Numbered from the stretch's first letter, positions 17,269-30,506 are shown. The stretch: DNA of 64,000 nt from Paraphysomonas bandaiensis (GCA_965644295.1 CBFFRP010000108.1:186001-250000), one strand, 5' to 3'. Notes: generated by a model not told the origin, from the sequence alone. Translations and numbers: made by a program.

Positions 17269-20200
17269 TCACAGATAGTTATCGTTTCCCCATACCAACT
17301 CTCTAACATTAAAAGGTGCATGGGCAACGTGCTCATTGGAAAGCGCGTCCACACTTAAGTGCTGTGTCACTGCCGAAAATTCTTGTGATTTGCCGACACT
17401 TCGATCAGATTTACCAACACTTGCGCGTAGGGCGTTCGATTTACTGTTTTCCTTTATTTCTTTCATGTGTGCCGTGTTCGCTAATGCAGCAGGTGTTTTC
17501 GTAATACCAACCAGTGATCGTATCTTCAGTTCTCGTCGATATAAAGATTTAACAGACTCTACCATTACAGTCCTTGGAGGACGGGCATCAGGACAGGCCA
17601 TTGCTCTCCATACACGCAGCACTATATTGCGGAATACACTGACACATCGCGCTGGTAATGTGTACTTCGAAGGGGTCACAAATAATGCATCACCGGAAAC
17701 TTCAGTATTGTCTTCCTTTTTCTTGGCAGGAGAAGACGGAGCAGCTTTGGCTTGTGCAGTCGGATGAGAACTCCTCACAGCGACACTCTTAGGTGCCTCC
17801 ATGCGCCATAAGAGAAGTAAAACTCTGCACGCGGCTGGGTCGTTTAGTATACGCGGGAAACTACTAAATATAGGATCACCAGTCGGCAGCCGACCAGACT
17901 GGGGAAGAATCCTTTCAATCTGAGACTGAAGCTCCTGTTCACGAATGGTATCAGCTAAGTAGTGACGGTATACACCTACAGCCGATACACTTTGGGCAGG
18001 AATAATAATATTCTGTGGGAGAGGTTGTAGTAGATTAGGCTCGGTCTGCGTAGCTGTTGAAATAAGAAATTCTAACTTCGAATGAATTTTGATACCAACA
18101 ACTCGTTTTATGGTCTCCAAGAGTCCTTGCCGCCGAGGAACATCACCTTTTTGAATCCCAACAACACAAAAAGGAGTTCCACCAGACATATCCAATGTTA
18201 TCTTCGTTGTTTTGCGAGTACCCATGCTGCTAATTGTATTCGAAATAGGAATCATTACCCATCCCGCAGACATTTCAACAGTCATGTAATCCTCATCCGA
18301 CCATCCCTCTTCCTCGGCCTCTTGAAGAGGTTCGTCTTTCGGGATTTCCTCATCCACATCTACGTTCTTTTCGTCTTCATCGTCGCTTTCATCGTCGTCT
18401 TTAGTATCTTTCTTACCAGTGTCCTCTTTCTCGGTTTCTTTAGTAGCATTCTTCTTGCTTGCGCGCTTCAATTTTTCGGTGCTAAATCTTATGTCTCCGT
18501 CAATGTGCGATTTCTTAAACAAAGTAGAGGACTTTAATTTTTCCTTCTTCTTCTTTTCTTCTTTCTCCTTTCGCTTTTTTTCTTCTTTTTCTCGCTTGAG
18601 CTGTGCCGCCATTTCACTTCGAGATGCCTTCATTGCTGCAGATATGGTGCGATAGTCCTCTTCATCCACACGCACGGTACTCACAAGCTCCATGAATAGA
18701 TATAAATTCTTTCCACTGACATTATTTTCAATATTGCTGCGATGATCCGCGTCATCAACAGTGCACCGAACAAAGCATGTCTTATCGGGATCAATTTCAT
18801 CTTCATTCGAAAAATGCCACATGTCAAGTTTCTTGGGGTTCACAGAGCCATGCAGTTTCATTACATTTCCTCTAAAAGTCGGAGATAGCCACTGCCCTTC
18901 ATATTCAGATTCTTCTGCCTTACATATAGCGAATCGAGCACACCTAGATCACAAAACTTTGAAAAGACAAAACAAAAACACTATAGGACAACCTGTTGAC
19001 AATGTTAGCCCTTCGCTTAGGAGTTTCGGTTGGTACTCCTGTCACGCGAAGGATTTGTACACTGAAGTCAAACTGTTTCGGAGCTAGGGTACTACCATCA
19101 GTGTCGTAAATGTTGGATAGATACAGATTCTAAAATATTATGTTAGCATACTCCAGAATTTAATAACGAACCACTTACTGCATCTAAATATTTAGATGGA
19201 CAGACAATTCTTCCGAGACTATGACTTGGGTCTTTTTCGATATCAGCCAAAACTGAAAGACGATAGTTAGCGGGAAGTCCAGCAAACATTGATAAATGTT
19301 TCTCTGGATCTGGTAAGACAGAATACTGCAACTGCACATATAGCATTAGGAAAAGCAAAACAAAGGATACCCACTCACTTTTCTCAATGCATATCTCAAA
19401 GGAACAGATAATCGTAGCATTGCATCATCATCTCTCGTCAACGCGTGTAGTTCCGCAAATTCCACCCATTCTATTACACCATTGCCATTGGTGTCGATAT
19501 ATTCCAACACTGTGTCGCATTCTTCTGCTGTAATATCGTCATTCTGCATGGTTAATATGTATCTAAGCTCCGATGCGGACACTGTCCCATCATGATTGAT
19601 ATCGAAGTGATTAAAAGCTTCTCTAAGTGCAGTGAAAGAAAGTGCAAATGTATCTTTATATTTGCTTCGGATATAAGGAATGACGTGGTCCATGAACACA
19701 TTGTACTCAATAACTCCTGTGTCGTTAGGATCAGTAGCGTTGAGCAGGTCTTCTATGTCCTTAGGCGAGGGCTTTTGCCCTAGAGCACAAAGAACTCTTT
19801 CGATATCCAATGATGCAATTTGATTGGTAGCATTCTGATCAAAAATATCGAACGCGAGTTGTATAACATTCAACATACGAGCGTCATATTTCTTCAATAA
19901 CTCTTCTTGTATCTTACACTGACCATCTTCTGTCAGTCCACTTCCTTCCCATTCTGAAATTTCTTTTCGTTCTTTCTTCTGTGGAGCTCCATCATCATCA
20001 TCCGTTGACTCAACATCTGCTAACCCCTTCGAAAATTTCTTCGCATCAATACTAGTTCCTTCCGTGTCCCCATAAGTGTTAAATATTGTTTCAAGAGCAG
20101 TTTCCGGAACCAGCATTCCAATACTCAAAAACAAATCAGAGGTCTTTTCACGACTCAACTTTTTTCCATGCTTCGCAGTATATTTGACTAAAAATTCTCC

Positions 20201-23200
20201 AAAGTTGTAGCCTTGTTTCTTACGTATTCTGTCAACTAGATGTAGTCGGTACATTACATTCCAAAGAGAACAGCAGCCTAAAAATGATAATAGTTCAGGG
20301 TAGAGGACACAATCGGAATTTTCATCTTGAAATGCTTTTACAACCCGCCGAACAAGTTTAAATTCCACACCATGTACTTCTTCTTTAAGCGCAGCCTCAG
20401 CATTACCAATCGTTACCATTCCAGACACACGGTCGTCTGTTGCGGCAAAGTTGCGGAAGAGTAGAGCCATTAAACGTCGTAAACTAACCGAATCTGATCC
20501 GCGAAGCATTTTCTCCATAATCTGCGTCCCAGCTTCCACTGTAGCTCTACTCTTTGTAAGCGGCTCGTGCAGGATAAGAAGTAGCAAGGAGTAGTCGATG
20601 TCTTTTTTGAAATTTCCATCTACAAAGCATAAATTTTCAGTTAAGAGATTCGATTCCGCCTCCGTAAGATCCAGAAAGTTGTCCGTGGTGCGCTGCAAGT
20701 CACGAATGGTGATGCGACCATTCAAGTCTGGATCGCGGCCCATAATCGCCTCTCTGAATCTATCTTTCTTCGCTAAATCTGCACGCAGTGTACACAATTT
20801 CCTGAACATATTCTTGCCAAAATCATAATCTTTAGAGTCAGTTTCTGCTTTCTTCCCTCCAAGTAGTCGGCTATAGCGCTTGCCACTTTTCGAATCATCG
20901 GTTTCTAGTTTCTCAAGCATAACTGGGATGTTGACTTTTTCTCTGCTGGAAAGCTTTCCGATGACGCAATACAGCTCTGCTTCAGTGATCGGCAGCCGCA
21001 TGCGTGAAAACAGTTGCACAACTTCATCTAAGTCCATCTTCTTTTCACAATCGGCAAACATTGATTTATAGTCGATTTCCTTGATGCGCATAACTCGGAG
21101 AATATGCTTCAGCTTCTCCTCGGCTTTTGGAACAATCGTACAAGCCATTACGAGGGCACGAACAACACCTATATCAATTGTATCTTCTTGATTAGGATCA
21201 AAAAAACGAAGCAACTCAGCTAGTTGAGTTGAGGAGACTCCTGGTCTACTGCCTCCAAGTTTCTTAAGAACTGATTCAAAAGAAGCTGCATCGACGTAAC
21301 CTCTTCTCTTTCGATCATGGGGTGCCAAATTCTTAACAAAATCTTTAGCGGTTATACGTCTCTTTGAGCAAATTAGTTGCAACACAGCACCCGCTTCGGC
21401 AGTCGCATCGGTACCTTGGGAAAGTGAAAACGAAAAAAGCAACAGATCATCAACACTGACAACTCCTTCGCTAGAAACATCTAAACTTTCAAATAGTAAA
21501 TTACAGTCTGACTCCAGTAGCTGACATCCAATATGTTCCAAGGCTTTCGAAAACTTCGCTTTCGTTAGAAAAGACGAAGTCGATGTTTTGTCAATGTTAG
21601 TTCTTGAGCGTCTAACATCATCTGAACCATCCTTATTTCCCGAGCCAAACTCCGACAGCGCTGTAGACAAGCTTGCACGAGATGCACTCAAAAATGCAGC
21701 AGTTGCTTGTTCAATGTCAGTCAACAAGCTCTGAGGAAGTAAACAAGAGTCCTCCATACCACCGCCTCGACTGGCTTTGGAACGTTTCTTGTTACGCTCC
21801 TTCTCAATAGACGATATAATTTCCTCCACAGAGAGTACACTACTATCGTCACGGTATCCATGTTCTTTACACAGTTCCGAAAACAAGGCTTTAATTTCAC
21901 GTGAGGTTAAAACCGCACCAAGAGTGGACATGGCATCTTCGAATCTATCACAATTTATTCCACGATCCCGAGATCTACTGGTTCTGCCCTCTCCCTTAAG
22001 TGCATCTTCTAGTGCCTGTTCATCAAGCATTCGCATCTGGTTTCTAAATTTCTCCATCAACTATAAAAACAATACTTTGTCATTGAAGTATCTGATAATA
22101 GCATACGTACCTCTTCCGTTCCTATCTCCCCAATTCCTAGCCACCAAACAAACCCAAAGTAGTCAACAATTCCTTCCCCTGTCATATCAACACGACTTTT
22201 CAACAAATTTTCTTCTCTAGAAGATAGGGAGGGATAAAACTTTCGAATAACTTTCATGAATTCTCCCAAACGAATGAAACCCTTGTGGTGCTTGTCGTAT
22301 TTTTCAAACAGGCTTGTCAACACGTTAAACTTGTATTTCATTCTCTTGAATGCGCCATCTTGTAAGGATTGTTGTAGCTCTGTCAGTTCAGAATCTTCAC
22401 CTTCATCTAAAGCGAATGCGACAAAAGCATCGTAGGATATGCTTCCTCCATCAGCATTCGAATGATTCGATGGTACACTCAGGGCTGTCGTGAGGGCTCC
22501 CATATCTTCTGCACTAATCCACTCACTAAAAGCCACTGACTTTGAGCCTCCTACATCGTAAACCTCACGAAGCCCAGTTTTAAATTCACGCTTTGTTACT
22601 ACTCCAGAATTACGGTGATCCATACTCGCAAAGCATGAGCGTGCAGTCGAATCAACAGATTTGTCGCAATATCTCTTCACCACGCGGCGCAACGAAGACA
22701 CGGTAGCAGCCGACAAAATCTTATCAACCTTAACACGATTATCCCGACGGCGGTACTCTCTATTATCCTGATCAACGGCCCTAACGCCTGAGTTTGCAAT
22801 GCCTTCAACTTCGTTGCCGCTTTCAAAACGAATATCATATGTCCCATCACGATTTGCTTTCAATACACGACCCGGTAACCAACGACCCCGAACACGAGCT
22901 TCCACCTTGTCACCGCGCTCAAACTTCACACCCTCAGCATCCGAATCATCAAAGGGATCCTTCTTCAATAACTTCCCACCAACCTTACGCATCATACTAG
23001 TTGGTACCTTGGGCTCACGATCACCATCGTCATAATCAATAGCATAGGTACCATCTCGATTCGCTCGGGATATTACACCCTTGTACCAAGCAGCGCCACC
23101 ACCGAAACGAGCTTCCACCTTCTCACCTACACTGTAGGTCTGGTCCTCAAGCTCAGAATCATCAAATGGATCCTTTCGATGAGGGCTCTTCGATCGCCCA

Positions 23201-26200
23201 CCAGCGGCTCGAACTGTTGGCGCAGGAAGACCATACTCCTCATCCCCACCATCAAATCGAATATCATATGTGCCATCACGATTTGCTTTCAATACACGAC
23301 CCGGTAACCAACGACCCCGAAGACGAGCTTCCACCTTGTCACCGCGCTCAAACTTCACACCCTCAGCATCCGAATCATCAAAGGGATCCTTCTTCAATAA
23401 CTTCCCACCAACCTTACGCATCATACTAGTTGGTACCTTGGGCTCACGATCACCATCGTCATAATCAATAGCATAGGTACCATCTCGATTCGCTCGGGAT
23501 ATTACACCCTTGTACCAAGCAGCGCCACCACCGAAACGAGCTTCCACCTTCTCACCTACACTGTACGTCTGGTCCTCAGCGTCTGAATCATCAAATGGAT
23601 CCTTTCGATGAGGGCTCTTCGATCGTCCACCAGCGGCTCGAACTGTTGGCGCAGGAAGACCATACTCGACATCCCCACCATCAAATCGAATATCATATGT
23701 GCCATCACGATTTGCTTTCAATACACGACCCGGTAACCAACGACCCCGAAGACGAGCTTCCACCTTGTCACCGCGCTCAAACTTCACACCCTCAGCATCC
23801 GAATCATCAAAGGGATCTTTCTTCAATAACTTCCCACCAACCTTACGCATCATACTAGTTGGTACCTTGGGCTCACGATCACCATCGTCATAATCAATAG
23901 CATAGGTACCATCTCGATTCGCTCGGGATATTACACCCTTGTACCAAGCAGCGCCACCACCGAAACGAGCTTCCACCTTGTCACCTACACTGTACGACTG
24001 GTCCTCAGCATCCGAATCGTCAAAGGGATCCTTCTTCAATAACTTCCCACCAACCTTACGCATCATACTAGTTGGTACCTTGGGCTCACGATCACCATCG
24101 TCATAATCAATAGCATAGGTACCATCTCGATTCGCTCGGGATATTACACCCTTGTACCAAGCAGCGCCACCACCGAAACGAGCTTCCACCTTCTCACCTA
24201 CACTGTACGTCTGGTCCTCAAGCTCAGATTCAAAGGAGTCCTTTCGATGAGGGCTCTTCGATCGCCCACCAGCGGCTCGAACTGTTGGCGCAGGAAGACC
24301 ATACTCGACATCCCCACCATCAAATCGAATATCATATGTGCCATCACGATTTGCTTTCAATACACGACCCGGTAACCAACGACCCCGAAGACGAGCTTCC
24401 ACCTTGTCACCGCGCTCAAACTTCACACCCTCAGCATCCGAATCATCAAAGGGATCCTTCTTCAATAACTTCCCACCAACCTTACGCATCATACTAGTTG
24501 GTACCTTGGGCTCACGATCACCATCGTCATAATCAATAGCATAGGTACCATCTCGATTCGCTCGGGATATTACACCCTTGTACCAAGCAGCGCCACCACC
24601 GAAACGAGCTTCCACCTTCTCACCTACACTGTAGGTCTGGTCCTCAAGCTCAGATTCAAAGGAGTCCTTTCGATGAGGGCTCTTCGATCGCCCACCAGCG
24701 GCTCGAACTGTTGGCGCAGGAAGACCATACTCGACATCCCCACCATCAAATCGAATATCATATGTGCCATCACGATTTGCTTTCAATACACGACCCGGTA
24801 ACCAACGACCCCGAAGACGAGCTTCCACCTTGTCACCGCGCTCAAACTTCACACCCTCAGCATCCGAATCATCAAAGGGATCCTTCTTCAATAACTTCCC
24901 ACCAACCTTACGCATCATACTAGTTGGTACCTTGGGCTCACGATCACCATCGTCATAATCAATAGCATAGGTACCATCTCGATTCGCTCGGGATATTACA
25001 CCCTTGTACCAAGCAGCGCCACCACCGAAACGAGCTTCCACCTTCTCACCTACACTGTACGTCTGGTCCTCAAGCTCAGATTCAAAGGAGTCCTTTCGAT
25101 GAGGGCTCTTCGATCGCCCACCAGCGGCTCGAACTGTTGGCGCAGGAAGACCATACTCGACATCCCCACCATCAAATCGAATATCATATGTGCCATTACG
25201 ATTTGCTTTCAATACACGACCCGGTAACCAACGACCCCGAAGTCGAGCTTCCACCTTGTCACCGCGCTCAAACTTCACACCCTCAGCATCCGAATCATCA
25301 AAGGGATCTTTCTTCAATAACTTCCCACCAACCTTACGCATCATACTAGTTGGTACCTTGGGCTCACGATCACCATCGTCATAATCAATAGCATAGGTAC
25401 CATCTCGATTCGCTCGGGATATTACACCCTTGTACCAAGCAGCACCACCACCGAAACGAGCTTCCACCTTCTCACCTACACTGTAGGTCTGGTCCTCAGC
25501 ATCCGAATCATCAAAGGGATCCTTCTTCAATAACTTCCCACCAACCTTACGCATCATACTAGTTGGTACCTTGGGCTCACGATCACCATCGTCATAATCA
25601 ATAGCATAGGTACCATCTCGATTCGCTCGGGATATTACACCCTTGTACCAAGCAGCGCCACCACCGAAACGAGCTTCCACCTTCTCACCTACACTGTACG
25701 TCTGGTCCTCAAGCTCAGATTCAAAGGAGTCCTTTCGATGAGGGCTCTTCGATCGCCCACCAGCGGCTCGAACTGTTGGCGCAGGAAGACCATACTCGAC
25801 ATCCCCACCATCAAATCGAATATCATATGTGCCATCACGATTTGCTTTCAATACACGACCCGGTAACCAACGACCCCGAAGACGAGCTTCCACCTTGTCA
25901 CCGCGCTCAAACTTCACACCCTCAGCATCCGAATCATCAAAGGGATCCTTCTTCAATAACTTCCCACCAACCTTACGCATCATACTAGTTGGTACCTTGG
26001 GCTCACGATCACCATCGTCATAATCAATAGCATAGGTACCATCTCGATTCGCTCGGGATATTACACCCTTGTACCAAGCAGCGCCACCACCGAAACGAGC
26101 TTCCACCTTCTCACCTACACTGTACGTCTGGTCCTCAAGCTCAGATTCAAAGGAGTCCTTTCGATGAGGGCTCTTCGATCGCCCACCAGCGGCTCGAACT

Positions 26201-29200
26201 GTTGGCGCAGGAAGACCATACTCGACATCCCCACCATCAAATCGAATATCATATGTGCCATCACGATTTGCTTTCAATACACGACCCGGTAACCAACGAC
26301 CCCGAAGACGAGCTTCCACCTTGTCACCGCGCTCAAACTTCACACCCTCAGCATCCGAATCATCAAAGGGATCCTTCTTCAATAACTTCCCACCAACCTT
26401 ACGCATCATACTAGTTGGTACCTTGGGCTCACGATCACCATCGTCATAATCAATAGCATAGGTACCATCTCGATTCGCTCGGGATATTACACCCTTGTAC
26501 CAAGCAGCGCCACCACCGAAACGAGCTTCCACCTTCTCACCTACACTGTACGTCTGGTCCTCAAGCTCAGATTCAAAGGAGTCCTTTCGATGAGGGCTCT
26601 TCGATCGCCCACCAGCGGCTCGAACTGTTGGCGCAGGAAGACCATACTCGACATCCCCACCATCAAATCGAATATCATATGTGCCATCACGATTTGCTTT
26701 CAATACACGACCCGGTAACCAACGACCCCGAAGACGAGCTTCCACCTTGTCACCGCGCTCAAACTTCACACCCTCAGCATCCGAATCATCAAAGGGATCC
26801 TTCTTCAATAACTTCCCACCAACCTTACGCATCATACTAGTTGGTACCTTGGGCTCACGATCACCATCGTCATAATCAATAGCATAGGTACCATCTCGAT
26901 TCGCTCGGGATATTACACCCTTGTACCAAGCAGCGCCACCACCGAAACGAGCTTCCACCTTCTCACCTACACTGTACGTCTGGTCCTCAAGCTCAGAATC
27001 ATCAAATGGATCCTTTCGATGAGGGCTCTTCGATCGTCCACCAGCGGCTCGAACTGTTGGCGCAGGAAGACCATACTCGACATCCCCACCATCAAATCGA
27101 ATATCATATGTGCCATCACGATTTGCTTTCAATACACGACCCGGTAACCAACGACCCCGAAGTCGAGCTTCCACCTTGTCACCGCGCTCAAACTTCACAC
27201 CCTCAGCATCCGAATCATCAAAGGGATCCTTCTTCAATAACTTCCCACCAACCTTACGCATCATACTAGTTGGTACCTTGGGCTCACGATCACCATCGTC
27301 ATAATCAATAGCATAGGTACCATCTCGATTCGCTCGGGATATTACACCCTTGTACCAAGCAGCGCCACCACCGAAACGAGCTTCCACCTTCTCACCTACA
27401 CTGAACGTCTGGTCCTCAAACTCAGAATCATCAAATGGACTTTTCTTCAATGGACTACTTGGACCACCAGCGGCTCGAACTGTTGGCGCAGGAAGACCAT
27501 ACTCGACATCCCCACCATCAAATCGAATATCATATGTGCCATCACGATTTGCTTTCAATACACGACCCGGTAACCAACGACCCCGAACACGAGCTTCCAC
27601 CTTGTCACCGCGCTCAAACTTCACACCCTCAGCATCCGAATCATCAAAGGGATCCTTCTTCAATAACTTCCCACCAACCTTACGCATCATACTAGTTGGT
27701 ACCTTGGGCTCACGATCACCATCGTCATAATCAATAGCATAGGTACCATCTCGATTCGCTCGGGATATTACACCCTTGTACCAAGCAGCGCCACCACCGA
27801 AACGAGCTTCCACCTTCTCACCTACACTGTACGTCTGGTCCTCAAGCTCAGAATCATCAAATGGACTTTTCTTCAATGGACTACTTGGACCACCAGCGGC
27901 TCGAACTGTTGGCGCAGGAAGACCATACTCGACATCCCCACCATCAAATCGAATATCATATGTGCCATCACGATTTGCTTTCAATACACGACCCGGTAAC
28001 CAACGACCCCGAAGACGAGCTTCCACCTTGTCACCGCGCTCAAACTTCACACCCTCAGCATCCGAATCATCAAAGGGATCCTTCTTCAATAACTTCCCAC
28101 CAACCTTACGCATCATACTAGTTGGTACCTTGGGCTCACGATCACCATCGTCATAATCAATAGCATAGGTACCATCTCGATTCGCTCGGGATATTACACC
28201 CTTGTACCAAGCAGCGCCACCACCGAAACGAGCTTCCACCTTCTCACCTACACTGTACGTCTGGTCCTCAAGCTCAGAATCATCAAATGGACTTTTCTTC
28301 AATGGACTACTTGGACCACCAGCGGCTCGAACTGTTGGCGCAGGAAGACCATACTCGACATCCCCACCATCAAATCGAATATCATATGTGCCATCACGAT
28401 TTGCTTTCAATACACGACCCGGTAACCAACGACCCCGAAGACGAGCTTCCACCTTGTCACCGCGCTCAAACTTCACACCCTCAGCATCCGAATCATCAAA
28501 GGGATCCTTCTTCAATAACTTCCCACCAACCTTACGCATCATACTAGTTGGTACCTTGGGCTCACGATCACCATCGTCATAATCAATAGCATAGGTACCA
28601 TCTCGATTCGCTCGGGATATTACACCCTTGTACCAAGCAGCGCCACCACCGAAACGAGCTTCCACCTTCTCACCTACACTGTACGTCTGGTCCTCAAGCT
28701 CAGAATCATCAAATGGACTTTTCTTCAATGGACTACTTGGACCACCAGCGGCTCGAACTGTTGGCGCAGGAAGACCATACTCGACATCCCCACCATCAAA
28801 TCGAATATCATATGTGCCATCACGATTTGCTTTCAATACACGACCCGGTAACCAACGACCCCGAACACGAGCTTCCACCTTGTCACCGCGCTCAAACTTC
28901 ACACCCTCAGCATCCGAATCATCAAAGGGATCCTTCTTCAATAACTTCCCACCAACCTTACGCATCATACTAGTTGGTACCTTGGGCTCACGATCACCAT
29001 CGTCATAATCAATAGCATAGGTACCATCTCGATTCGCTCGGGATATTACACCCTTGTACCAAGCAGCGCCACCACCGAAACGAGCTTCCACCTTCTCACC
29101 TACACTGTACGTCTGGTCCTCAGCATCTGAATCATCTAGGCCCATCCGTGATCGTCCTATTGTTTTTCTTGAAGGTGTTGCAAAGTCAGAGTCATCGGCT

Positions 29201-29797
29201 GCTGAACTTTTAACCGGTGTGTTAGAGACTCCCGAATTGTCGTGAATGCGTATAGGTCGAACTCCTCTTTCCGTCTCCAAATTATCGTCATACATAACAT
29301 CATACGTGCCATCTGCATTCTTCTTTTCTATCGTAGCTTCTCGGTATCCTGGCTTCCCAGGCGGTTTCTTGACCTATCGAATTGTTTATAAAAATCGCAT
29401 ACCAAAGATCATCAAACCTTCACTGCCTGTCCTCGTTCAAATACTTTCGATGTGCTGTTACCAAACTAGTTACTAGGTAAATCCATATTGTAGAACACAA
29501 CCTTGATGTAGTCGTTACTGTCCTCGGTCTGATCGGTGTGCTGGTTCTCCCTCCTCCATCATCAAAACTCCCAGCTCGCGCTCTAATAAAACATTATAAA
29601 TATTGTTTGGGTTTTAGCGGATGGTATACCGTGATAATCCACCACTTGCCGGTCGGGCTCCTCCACTCCTGCTAAGCCTGTGAATATCTAATGAGTACAC
29701 CTCAAAACAACCCATATAATATCTACTTTGGAGGGGGGCGAGCTCGAGCAGGTTTATCAAAGCTTATATCAAATGCCTCAGCGCTCTTTACAGGCAT
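17269..29797 (-). CDS. Giant (~4,050 aa, 9 exons) protein: ~31 Tudor/SH3-fold repeats, many EF-hands and a C-terminal nephrocystin-1 homology domain
   Basis: ATG 29797; four small exons splice into exon ~29373-22111; intron 22110-22061 joins the EF-hand exon in frame; further short introns lead to the 17269 stop. C-terminal motifs GLPANYRLSVL, NVMKLHG..PKK.DMWHFS, LFMEL, EMSAGW, GGTPF, LPQNII, YRHYLAD, PIFSSFPRIL occur in the order I recall for NPHP1. Confidence 0.8.
22790..29125 (-). repeat. Coding tandem array: 16 type-A + 14 type-B Tudor-like units (~213 bp each; AB dimer 426-429 bp)
   Basis: Near-identical DNA repeats; two positions have AA instead of AB (639-bp spacing). Confidence 0.97.
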
Positions 29798-30506
29798 GAG
29801 AAAATAAAATAATACTCAAAACAAAGTCTAATTTAATAATCAATACTCAGCATAATGAACACTTTCGGTCATTCGTTTGCGCTGATGAAAAAATATCGTT
29901 ATCCAAACAGACCTCAATGAGCAGAATGGATTCTATTCTAGTAGACTCACTCGACACTCACTCTGCAGACAGTTCAGTTCCTCTTATGCCGATATTTAAA
30001 TACTTCGTTCCGTTTTTGAAATACAGCAAGCAATACTGAAAGAGGAATACATGCAACTACCGTAGAATACCATGGAATACAGCAAACTACAACTGTATTC
30101 AGATAAATACGGCCGCTCATCTCCATGGATCTGGCTGTGGTATTCCGGTATTGTATTGTAGGGCCAGCCTGTATGTGTGCTGTACATCCTCTGTACAGCT
30201 GCACCTCAAGCAGTGCATGGATCCTCTGTAGGCAGTGTACGTATGTATGGCACAGTGCTATGCACGCATGCTCGCTCGTATGCACCGTAAGACATGAGTG
30301 CAAGAACAACTGGGGACAGAGGCACTGCTTCCAGTTATACATCTACGGTTGCAAAGTATAAATAGATGATTCAGCTCTCACGTGCATCATCCTATTGCAT
30401 CTAGTGAACTATATCACAAGAGCACTAACGCATAAGTAAGTGGGTCTGCTAGAACAATAATCAAAACCAGACCATTCGTGAACAAAATTATCTGATAGCA
30501 TAAGAA

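Follow-up and report, generated by a model that had tools for sequence, protein, structure and literature searches.

A giant Paraphysomonas bandaiensis gene that joins a Tudor-like array and EF-hands to a probable NPHP1 family core

We analysed a stretch of 64,000 nucleotides from Paraphysomonas bandaiensis (GCA_965644295.1 CBFFRP010000108.1:186001-250000; hereafter the window, from whose first letter all positions are counted), and here we describe a giant gene on its minus strand. The gene consists of nine exons, starts with an ATG at 29797 and ends with a stop codon at 17269-17271, and the coding parts of the nine exons add up to 12,144 bases, giving 4,048 residues. From its N-terminus, the encoded protein contains an array of 31 Tudor-like units, an interval of ~1,100 residues that bears EF-hands, and a C-terminal region of 654 residues that probably belongs to the family of nephrocystin-1 (NPHP1), a protein of the base of the cilium whose gene is the most commonly mutated one in nephronophthisis.

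Gene structure and transcription

Three long minus-strand open reading frames (ORFs; 22057-29295, 19346-22060 and 17269-18861) are present in this region and are connected by short GT-AG introns. The initial annotation had joined such pieces in frame into one protein of ~4,050 residues, and the RNA agrees with it: the gene has eight introns of 44-50 nt, each of the GT-AG type, and the splicing of all eight was seen in RNA-derived contigs. In the 3′ part, an intronless transcript record of the Joint Genome Institute (JGI; Ga0186469_100254, 5,840 nt) matches the window from 23290 to 17266 with 12 mismatches, one scaffold gap of ten N and four deletions, and these deletions are exactly the four 3′ introns (22061-22110, 19332-19378, 19130-19178 and 18944-18992), which bears out the continuity proposed across 22061-22110 and ~18945-19380. 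In addition, the product of this record (P0164, 1,225 aa), which is an independent JGI call, has exon joins identical to those of our exon model made by eye. The gap lies at positions 2100-2109 of the record (L001) and splits it into two gene calls of 727 aa and 1,225 aa, and as a result public databases carry just a truncated product that lacks the Tudor-like units.

In the 5′ part, the four introns are skipped in the RNA contigs of runs X1 and X3, whereas the sequence of DNA run X18 follows that of the window through all of them and retains them. The RNA contigs extend 5′ to 29952 and, over 29726-29952, cover the 5′ untranslated region (UTR; to at least 29952) together with coding exon 1 (29727-29952). 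The joints in these contigs, of which the DNA run has none, define the following exons: after the intron at 29678-29726 comes exon 2 (29630-29677, 48 nt), after that at 29583-29629 exon 3 (29502-29582, 81 nt), and after that at 29455-29501 exon 4 (29418-29454, 37 nt), which holds the start of the first Tudor-like unit, a degenerate one that straddles the last 5′ intron (29374-29417). Exon 5 (22111-29373) has 2,421 stop-free codons and carries the Tudor-like units and, in its tail, the first EF-hand pair. The 50-nt intron at 22061-22110 is in frame and leads to exon 6 (19379-22060, 894 codons), which is chiefly helical with scattered EF-hand pairs. Exon 7 (19179-19331) lies between the introns at 19332-19378 and 19130-19178, exon 8 (18993-19129) is followed by the intron at 18944-18992, and exon 9 runs to the stop codon. 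The locus is thus one gene with one mRNA.

Three further observations concern transcription around this locus. The 5′ UTR (29798-29952) contains two short upstream ORFs ahead of the main ATG, one of 10 codons (ATG...TGA) and one of 6 codons (ATG...TAA). A neighbouring RNA contig of 1,516 nt with high coverage (run X1) starts ~400 nt upstream of the 5′ UTR, at 30354-30400 of the window, and is probably part of another gene. Finally, marine metatranscriptome runs from two studies (X5, cDNA; X6-X9, poly(A)-selected) contain 38-49% of the words of 17269-22800, and therefore this gene or a very close relative of it is expressed in the sea.

Domains of the encoded protein

The protein was searched exon by exon, with the database protein P0164 as a stand-in for exons 6 (in part) to 9. 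The array at the N-terminal side had been estimated at about 31 Tudor-like domains, and when the units were anchored on the motif [DN]GTY in exon 5 the count was exactly 31, composed of the degenerate unit, 16 type A units and 14 type B units. Tandem Repeats Finder describes the near-identical tandem part (22823-29136) as a super-repeat of 426 nt, i.e., one type A plus one type B unit, in 14.8 copies with 93% matches. When a 300-aa piece holding four units was compared with Pfam, it matched Agenet (1.6e-19, 70.6 bits with a cut-off of 27) and Tudor_5 (1.1e-14, 54.4 bits with a cut-off of 31), and array units also matched SGF29_Tudor and the MORC2 chromo-like family. The closest solved sequences are the Tudor domains of PHF20L1 and PHF20; these matches are weak (E 0.1-0.4), and the aromatic and Asp positions (W/F, Y, F/Y and D) align. 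On these sequence grounds, the units are members of the Tudor 'royal family'.

The linkers between the units are acidic and stereotyped, with 23 occurrences of [DS]PFDDS and 19 of DPF, each with Ser and then acidic residues. Within 22823-29136, every linker bears the acidic motif [DS]PFDDS(D/E), and three linker variants occur in ordered blocks. The type B unit is absent twice in the array, which leaves A-A junctions. At the DNA level, the 16 type A cores fall into just five versions, with a proportion of synonymous differences (pS) of ~0.012, and the ratio of nonsynonymous to synonymous substitution (dN/dS) across the repeats gives no meaningful value because the differences are too few. Judged from these sequences, the copies are either of very recent origin or are being kept similar to one another.

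Between the array and the C-terminal region, Pfam EF-hand pairs are confined to three stretches, namely the tail of exon 5 (EF-hand_7, 9.4e-10), residues ~160-270 of exon 6 and the final 144 residues of that exon; the remainder of this interval has no Pfam match, and only five loops fit the EF-loop pattern. The initial annotation had spoken of ~900 residues of EF-hands, which was an overstatement. However, the calmodulin-like module of four EF-hands that it had placed directly before the C-terminal domain is present at 19436-19873, with all four quoted loops (DQNATNQIASLD, DPNDTGVIEYNV, DINHDGTVSASE and DTNGNGVIEWVE) and a Pfam EF-hand_7 match of 1.5e-20 in two stretches. In this module, loops 3 and 4 follow the canonical pattern, position 12 of loop 1 is Asp and its position 6 is not Gly, and loop 2 is without an acidic residue at position 12, a combination that probably limits Ca2+ binding in the module to its C-lobe. 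The module ends ~26 residues ahead of the C-terminal region.

The C-terminal region is composed of a lead-in, a C2 sandwich and a helical domain. We modelled it by AlphaFold2 with an alignment of 96 sequences, and obtained a predicted local distance difference test score (pLDDT) of 79.1 and a predicted template modelling score (pTM) of 0.78; an earlier alignment of 12 sequences without the first C2 strands had given a pLDDT of 51.6 and was unusable. The model starts with the ordered lead-in of exon 7 (LPDP...GLPANYRLSVL), which is kept in P0010, P0019, P0043 and other relatives and has a pLDDT of 88-96. It is followed by an eight-stranded sandwich (model residues 64-403, 18028-19093), whose first strands come from exon 8, as given by the transcript joins and the model, and the rest from exon 9. 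In the comparison with solved structures by VIA-align, this sandwich reached Z scores of 10.4-8, with 47 chains at Z>=8, and those listed are mostly named C2 domains; by its modelled fold the sandwich is a C2 domain. Between two of its strands lies a charged insertion of ~125 aa (model residues 191-316, 18289-18666), rich in Lys, Glu and Asp, which is predicted as one long helix followed by disorder (pLDDT mostly <50). This insertion is variable in relatives and absent or much shorter in divergent ones such as P0143, P0109 and P0132. The alpha-helical domain (17272-18012), supported by the family alignment, the model and structural matches, ends with the conserved motif PFNVRELxWG just before the stop codon. 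The motifs that had been quoted earlier for the C-terminal domain are all in the sequence and are conserved across the family.

The likeness of this region to nephrocystin-1, which the initial annotation had proposed motif by motif, was found over its 654 residues by fold and by language-model features. The top shape match in the ESM Atlas is a chordate cluster named 'nephrocystin-1 isoform X2' (752 aa, 95% with SH3), for which query residues 5-654 were matched with 399 residues aligned and TM scores of 0.52/0.45 (0.52 by query). The next matches, with TM scores taken by target, are a fragment of a chordate SH3 protein (0.69) and 'nephrocystin-1-like' (0.66). Two plain C2-domain clusters match the sandwich only (TM 0.56 and 0.42 by target), and other, unrelated rows are at 0.26 or below; the C2 domain and the helical domain directly following it thus match the NPHP1 models jointly. 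The feature search in the same atlas put the same nephrocystin-1 clusters on top (0.93 and 0.88). No usable match was returned in the feature search with the 530-aa piece of the last exon alone, Foldseek of the core model against the PDB gave nothing at E<=0.001, and the sequence comparison with the PDB matched no NPHP1 core structure. Neither an SH3 domain nor a coiled coil was detected in the protein, and no exon had a Pfam SH3 match. With the evidence of the models, we consider it probable that the C-terminal region belongs to the NPHP1 family.

Relatives and genome context

Using a profile of the conserved part of the core, we recovered 165 relatives among 1.84 billion representatives; named sources among them are one Percolomonas and one Ochromonas. 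In a survey of architectures, EF-hands were found in 17 of the 39 longest relatives, and EF-hands together with the core were seen, for example, in P0010, P0019, P0109, P0132 and P0143 (Percolomonas). Three relatives (P0043, P0065 and P0139) begin with a single Tudor-like domain that aligns to the array units and shares with them the pattern GDKVEA..YRG..KWYPG...DGTYDIDYDDG; one NPHP1 subfamily is therefore composed of Tudor, EF-hands and core. The contig of P0003 begins at the gene and is uninformative on arrays in close relatives.

Zhang and Aravind (2012, PMC3495828) defined NPHP1 as SH3, NPHP1-C2 and alpha-helical domain, traced its C2 domain to the last ancestor of all eukaryotes, and reported that in some clades N-terminal EF-hands replace the SH3 domain, for which they suggested a response to Ca2+. 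The EF-hand-NPHP1 fusion is therefore already published, and the view in the initial annotation that the whole architecture was undescribed seems to hold for its Tudor part only. We found no mention in the literature of a Tudor, EF-hand and NPHP1-core form or of a Tudor amplification, and it is this part that appears to be new, as a single N-terminal Tudor domain in three relatives that is amplified to 31 here.

The NPHP1-like core occurs only once in the assembly of 62.6 Mb. The same genome contains three B9-domain loci, IFT57 and an RPGRIP1-type C2 (PF11618, 1.4e-20), which indicates that the organism has retained genes both for a cilium and for the two modules of the transition zone. These matches lend no support to the idea that its flagellum is being lost. 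Tudor-like units of the same subfamily (43-49% identity to those of the window) form long tandem arrays in at least three other giant ORFs, on contigs C394, C144 and C11, so that the array is not specific to this gene; judging from these sequences, arrays of Tudor-like units are a recurrent feature across the genome of this organism. Tudor-array coordinates elsewhere in this genome (G000) are C394:194206-206301, C144:168279-176390, C11:118285-128787 and C66:489402-490751, and the giant open frames with such arrays have 4,320, 3,313 and 4,336 aa.

Proposed role, alternatives and known systems

We consider it likely that this gene is the single NPHP1 family gene of the organism, a protist form in which EF-hands replace the coiled coil and SH3 domain of animals and in which a Tudor barrel has been amplified to 31. 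By analogy with NPHP1 of animals, nematodes and Chlamydomonas, we infer that the C2 and helical core would dock at the ciliary transition-zone membrane with NPHP4 and RPGRIP1L. The calmodulin-like module lies ~26 residues upstream of the core and its last two loops are canonical, and because of this Ca2+ could alter the presentation of the core, its docking or the pose of the N-terminal arm. This arm, in which the single Tudor-like barrel that begins the proteins of this subfamily would recently have been amplified to 31 near-identical copies on acidic [DS]PFDDS linkers, could be long and highly multivalent for a repeated ligand. As a whole, the role of a Ca2+-sensing, multivalent transition-zone scaffold is plausible by these analogies.

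Several points weigh against this proposal. First, neither the word-indexed nor the exhaustive profile searches by HMMER reached any named animal NPHP1, the insert-free alignment A6 likewise did not, and no Pfam model of any family matches the core in the searches of every exon, which gave just low-complexity noise (e.g., DUF4778); hence the link to animal NPHP1 comes from predicted structure, embeddings and one paper. Second, SH3 was found in none of the 39 long relatives scanned, and only four to five EF loops of the window protein appear, by their sequences, able to bind Ca2+. Third, NPHP1 is restricted to opisthokonts or metazoans according to the surveys of Barker 2014 and Nevers 2017 (PMC4092220, PMC5850483), a view that is contradicted by the family recovered here. 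Fourth, the similar arrays in other giant ORFs suggest that the array is not a device specific to the transition zone. Fifth, the middle of the array (about 23290-29100) is bridged by no transcript or short-read contig, and the copy number of the Tudor-like units therefore rests on this assembly; the evidence over this part is the unbroken 2,421-codon exon.

The alternative that survives best, which we hold to be possible and still rather unlikely, is that the array is without specific function, being a young and unstable amplification that follows a genome-wide tendency and serves at most as a spacer, with a copy number that could differ among strains or be mis-assembled. It fits with the few DNA versions of the type A cores and their low pS, with the long arrays of the same subfamily on the other three contigs, with the single Tudor domain of three relatives, and with short-read contigs that stop at the array edge. 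However, the 7.3-kb exon is an unbroken frame whose two ends are both found in transcripts, in frame with the remainder, the linker variants stand in ordered blocks as expected if the array is truly resolved, and distant members retain the N-terminal Tudor domain, so there is selection on the domain itself. Another explanation places the protein outside the transition zone. It could, together with the other giant Tudor and EF-hand proteins, form a Ca2+-responsive cortical or cytoskeletal network in which the NPHP1-like C2 is only a membrane anchor. The several giant Tudor-array genes of the genome would suit such a network, and animal NPHP1 acts also at cell junctions, but only one copy of the NPHP1 core exists in this genome, which retains B9, IFT57 and RPGRIP1-type genes, and we regard this explanation as unlikely. 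It is improbable that the C-terminal region is instead a separate C2 and helical family, nearer to NPHP4 or to another ciliary C2 protein and like NPHP1 in predicted shape only, for although HMMER did not link the sequence to animal NPHP1, the feature search lists NPHP4 clusters as well (0.90 and 0.87) and the two surveys see no NPHP1 outside opisthokonts or metazoans, the match to the NPHP1 clusters extends over the lead-in and both domains (residues 5-654), clusters of NPHP4 and of plain C2 domains are short and might span no more than the sandwich, and EF-hand forms of NPHP1, with a C2 domain traced to the last ancestor of all eukaryotes, are reported (PMC3495828).

Returning to the reading as an amplified protist NPHP1, the gene and its family of 165 members support the view of Zhang and Aravind (PMC3495828) that the C2 and helical core is ancient and that it is coupled to EF-hands in many protists. 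The calmodulin-like module beside the core gives a testable idea, in which transition-zone function, or the shedding of flagella, may be gated by Ca2+ through NPHP1. In addition, the 31-fold Tudor array would illustrate the speed at which the valency of a scaffold can change, and it is a sign that Tudor-like arrays are used more widely among the giant proteins of this organism. Going further, one may speculate that the 31-barrel arm is more than a spacer and that the NPHP1 homologue, joined by the other giant proteins of the Tudor-array and EF-hand kind, builds a lineage-specific, Ca2+-responsive, multivalent lattice at the flagellar base, as a candidate part of the transitional helix of stramenopiles or of the machinery for Ca2+-triggered flagellar shedding, in which the barrels read a repeated and possibly methylated ligand; we give this extension little credence.

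Compared with animal NPHP1 (JBTS4), the window protein has two common features. First, its C-terminal core is a C2 sandwich followed by a helical domain, for which animal NPHP1 is the best match by structure and embedding over ~400 residues. Second, a small SH3-fold barrel with acidic flanks is located N-terminal of the core; in animal NPHP1, acidic stretches flank the SH3 domain. In contrast, animal NPHP1 is ~730-750 aa long and carries one SH3 domain besides a coiled coil, whereas in the window protein of 4,048 aa neither of these was detected, and 31 Tudor-like barrels, the EF-hand-bearing region of ~1,100 aa and the charged C2 insertion of 125 aa are present instead. The [DS]PFDDS linkers presumably resemble the adaptor-binding DPF repeats of Eps15-type linkers and the CK2-type acidic Ser sites seen as CK2/PACS-1 acidic clusters in animal NPHP1, and they may also be plain acidic linkers. 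The array units are similar to the Agenet-type Tudor domains, including those of PHF20/PHF20L1 and SGF29, in their Pfam matches and their aligned aromatic positions. However, PHF20/PHF20L1 and SGF29 read chromatin and have one or two such domains, whereas here 31 tandem copies are found in a predicted ciliary protein, with putative binding of methyl-Lys or methyl-Arg. Among the closest known architectures is that of the protist EF-hand NPHP1 homologues (PMC3495828), which likewise have EF-hands N-terminal of the NPHP1-C2 and helical domain; these proteins are ~670-1,100 aa long and no Tudor domain is reported for them, whereas the gene in the window has 31.

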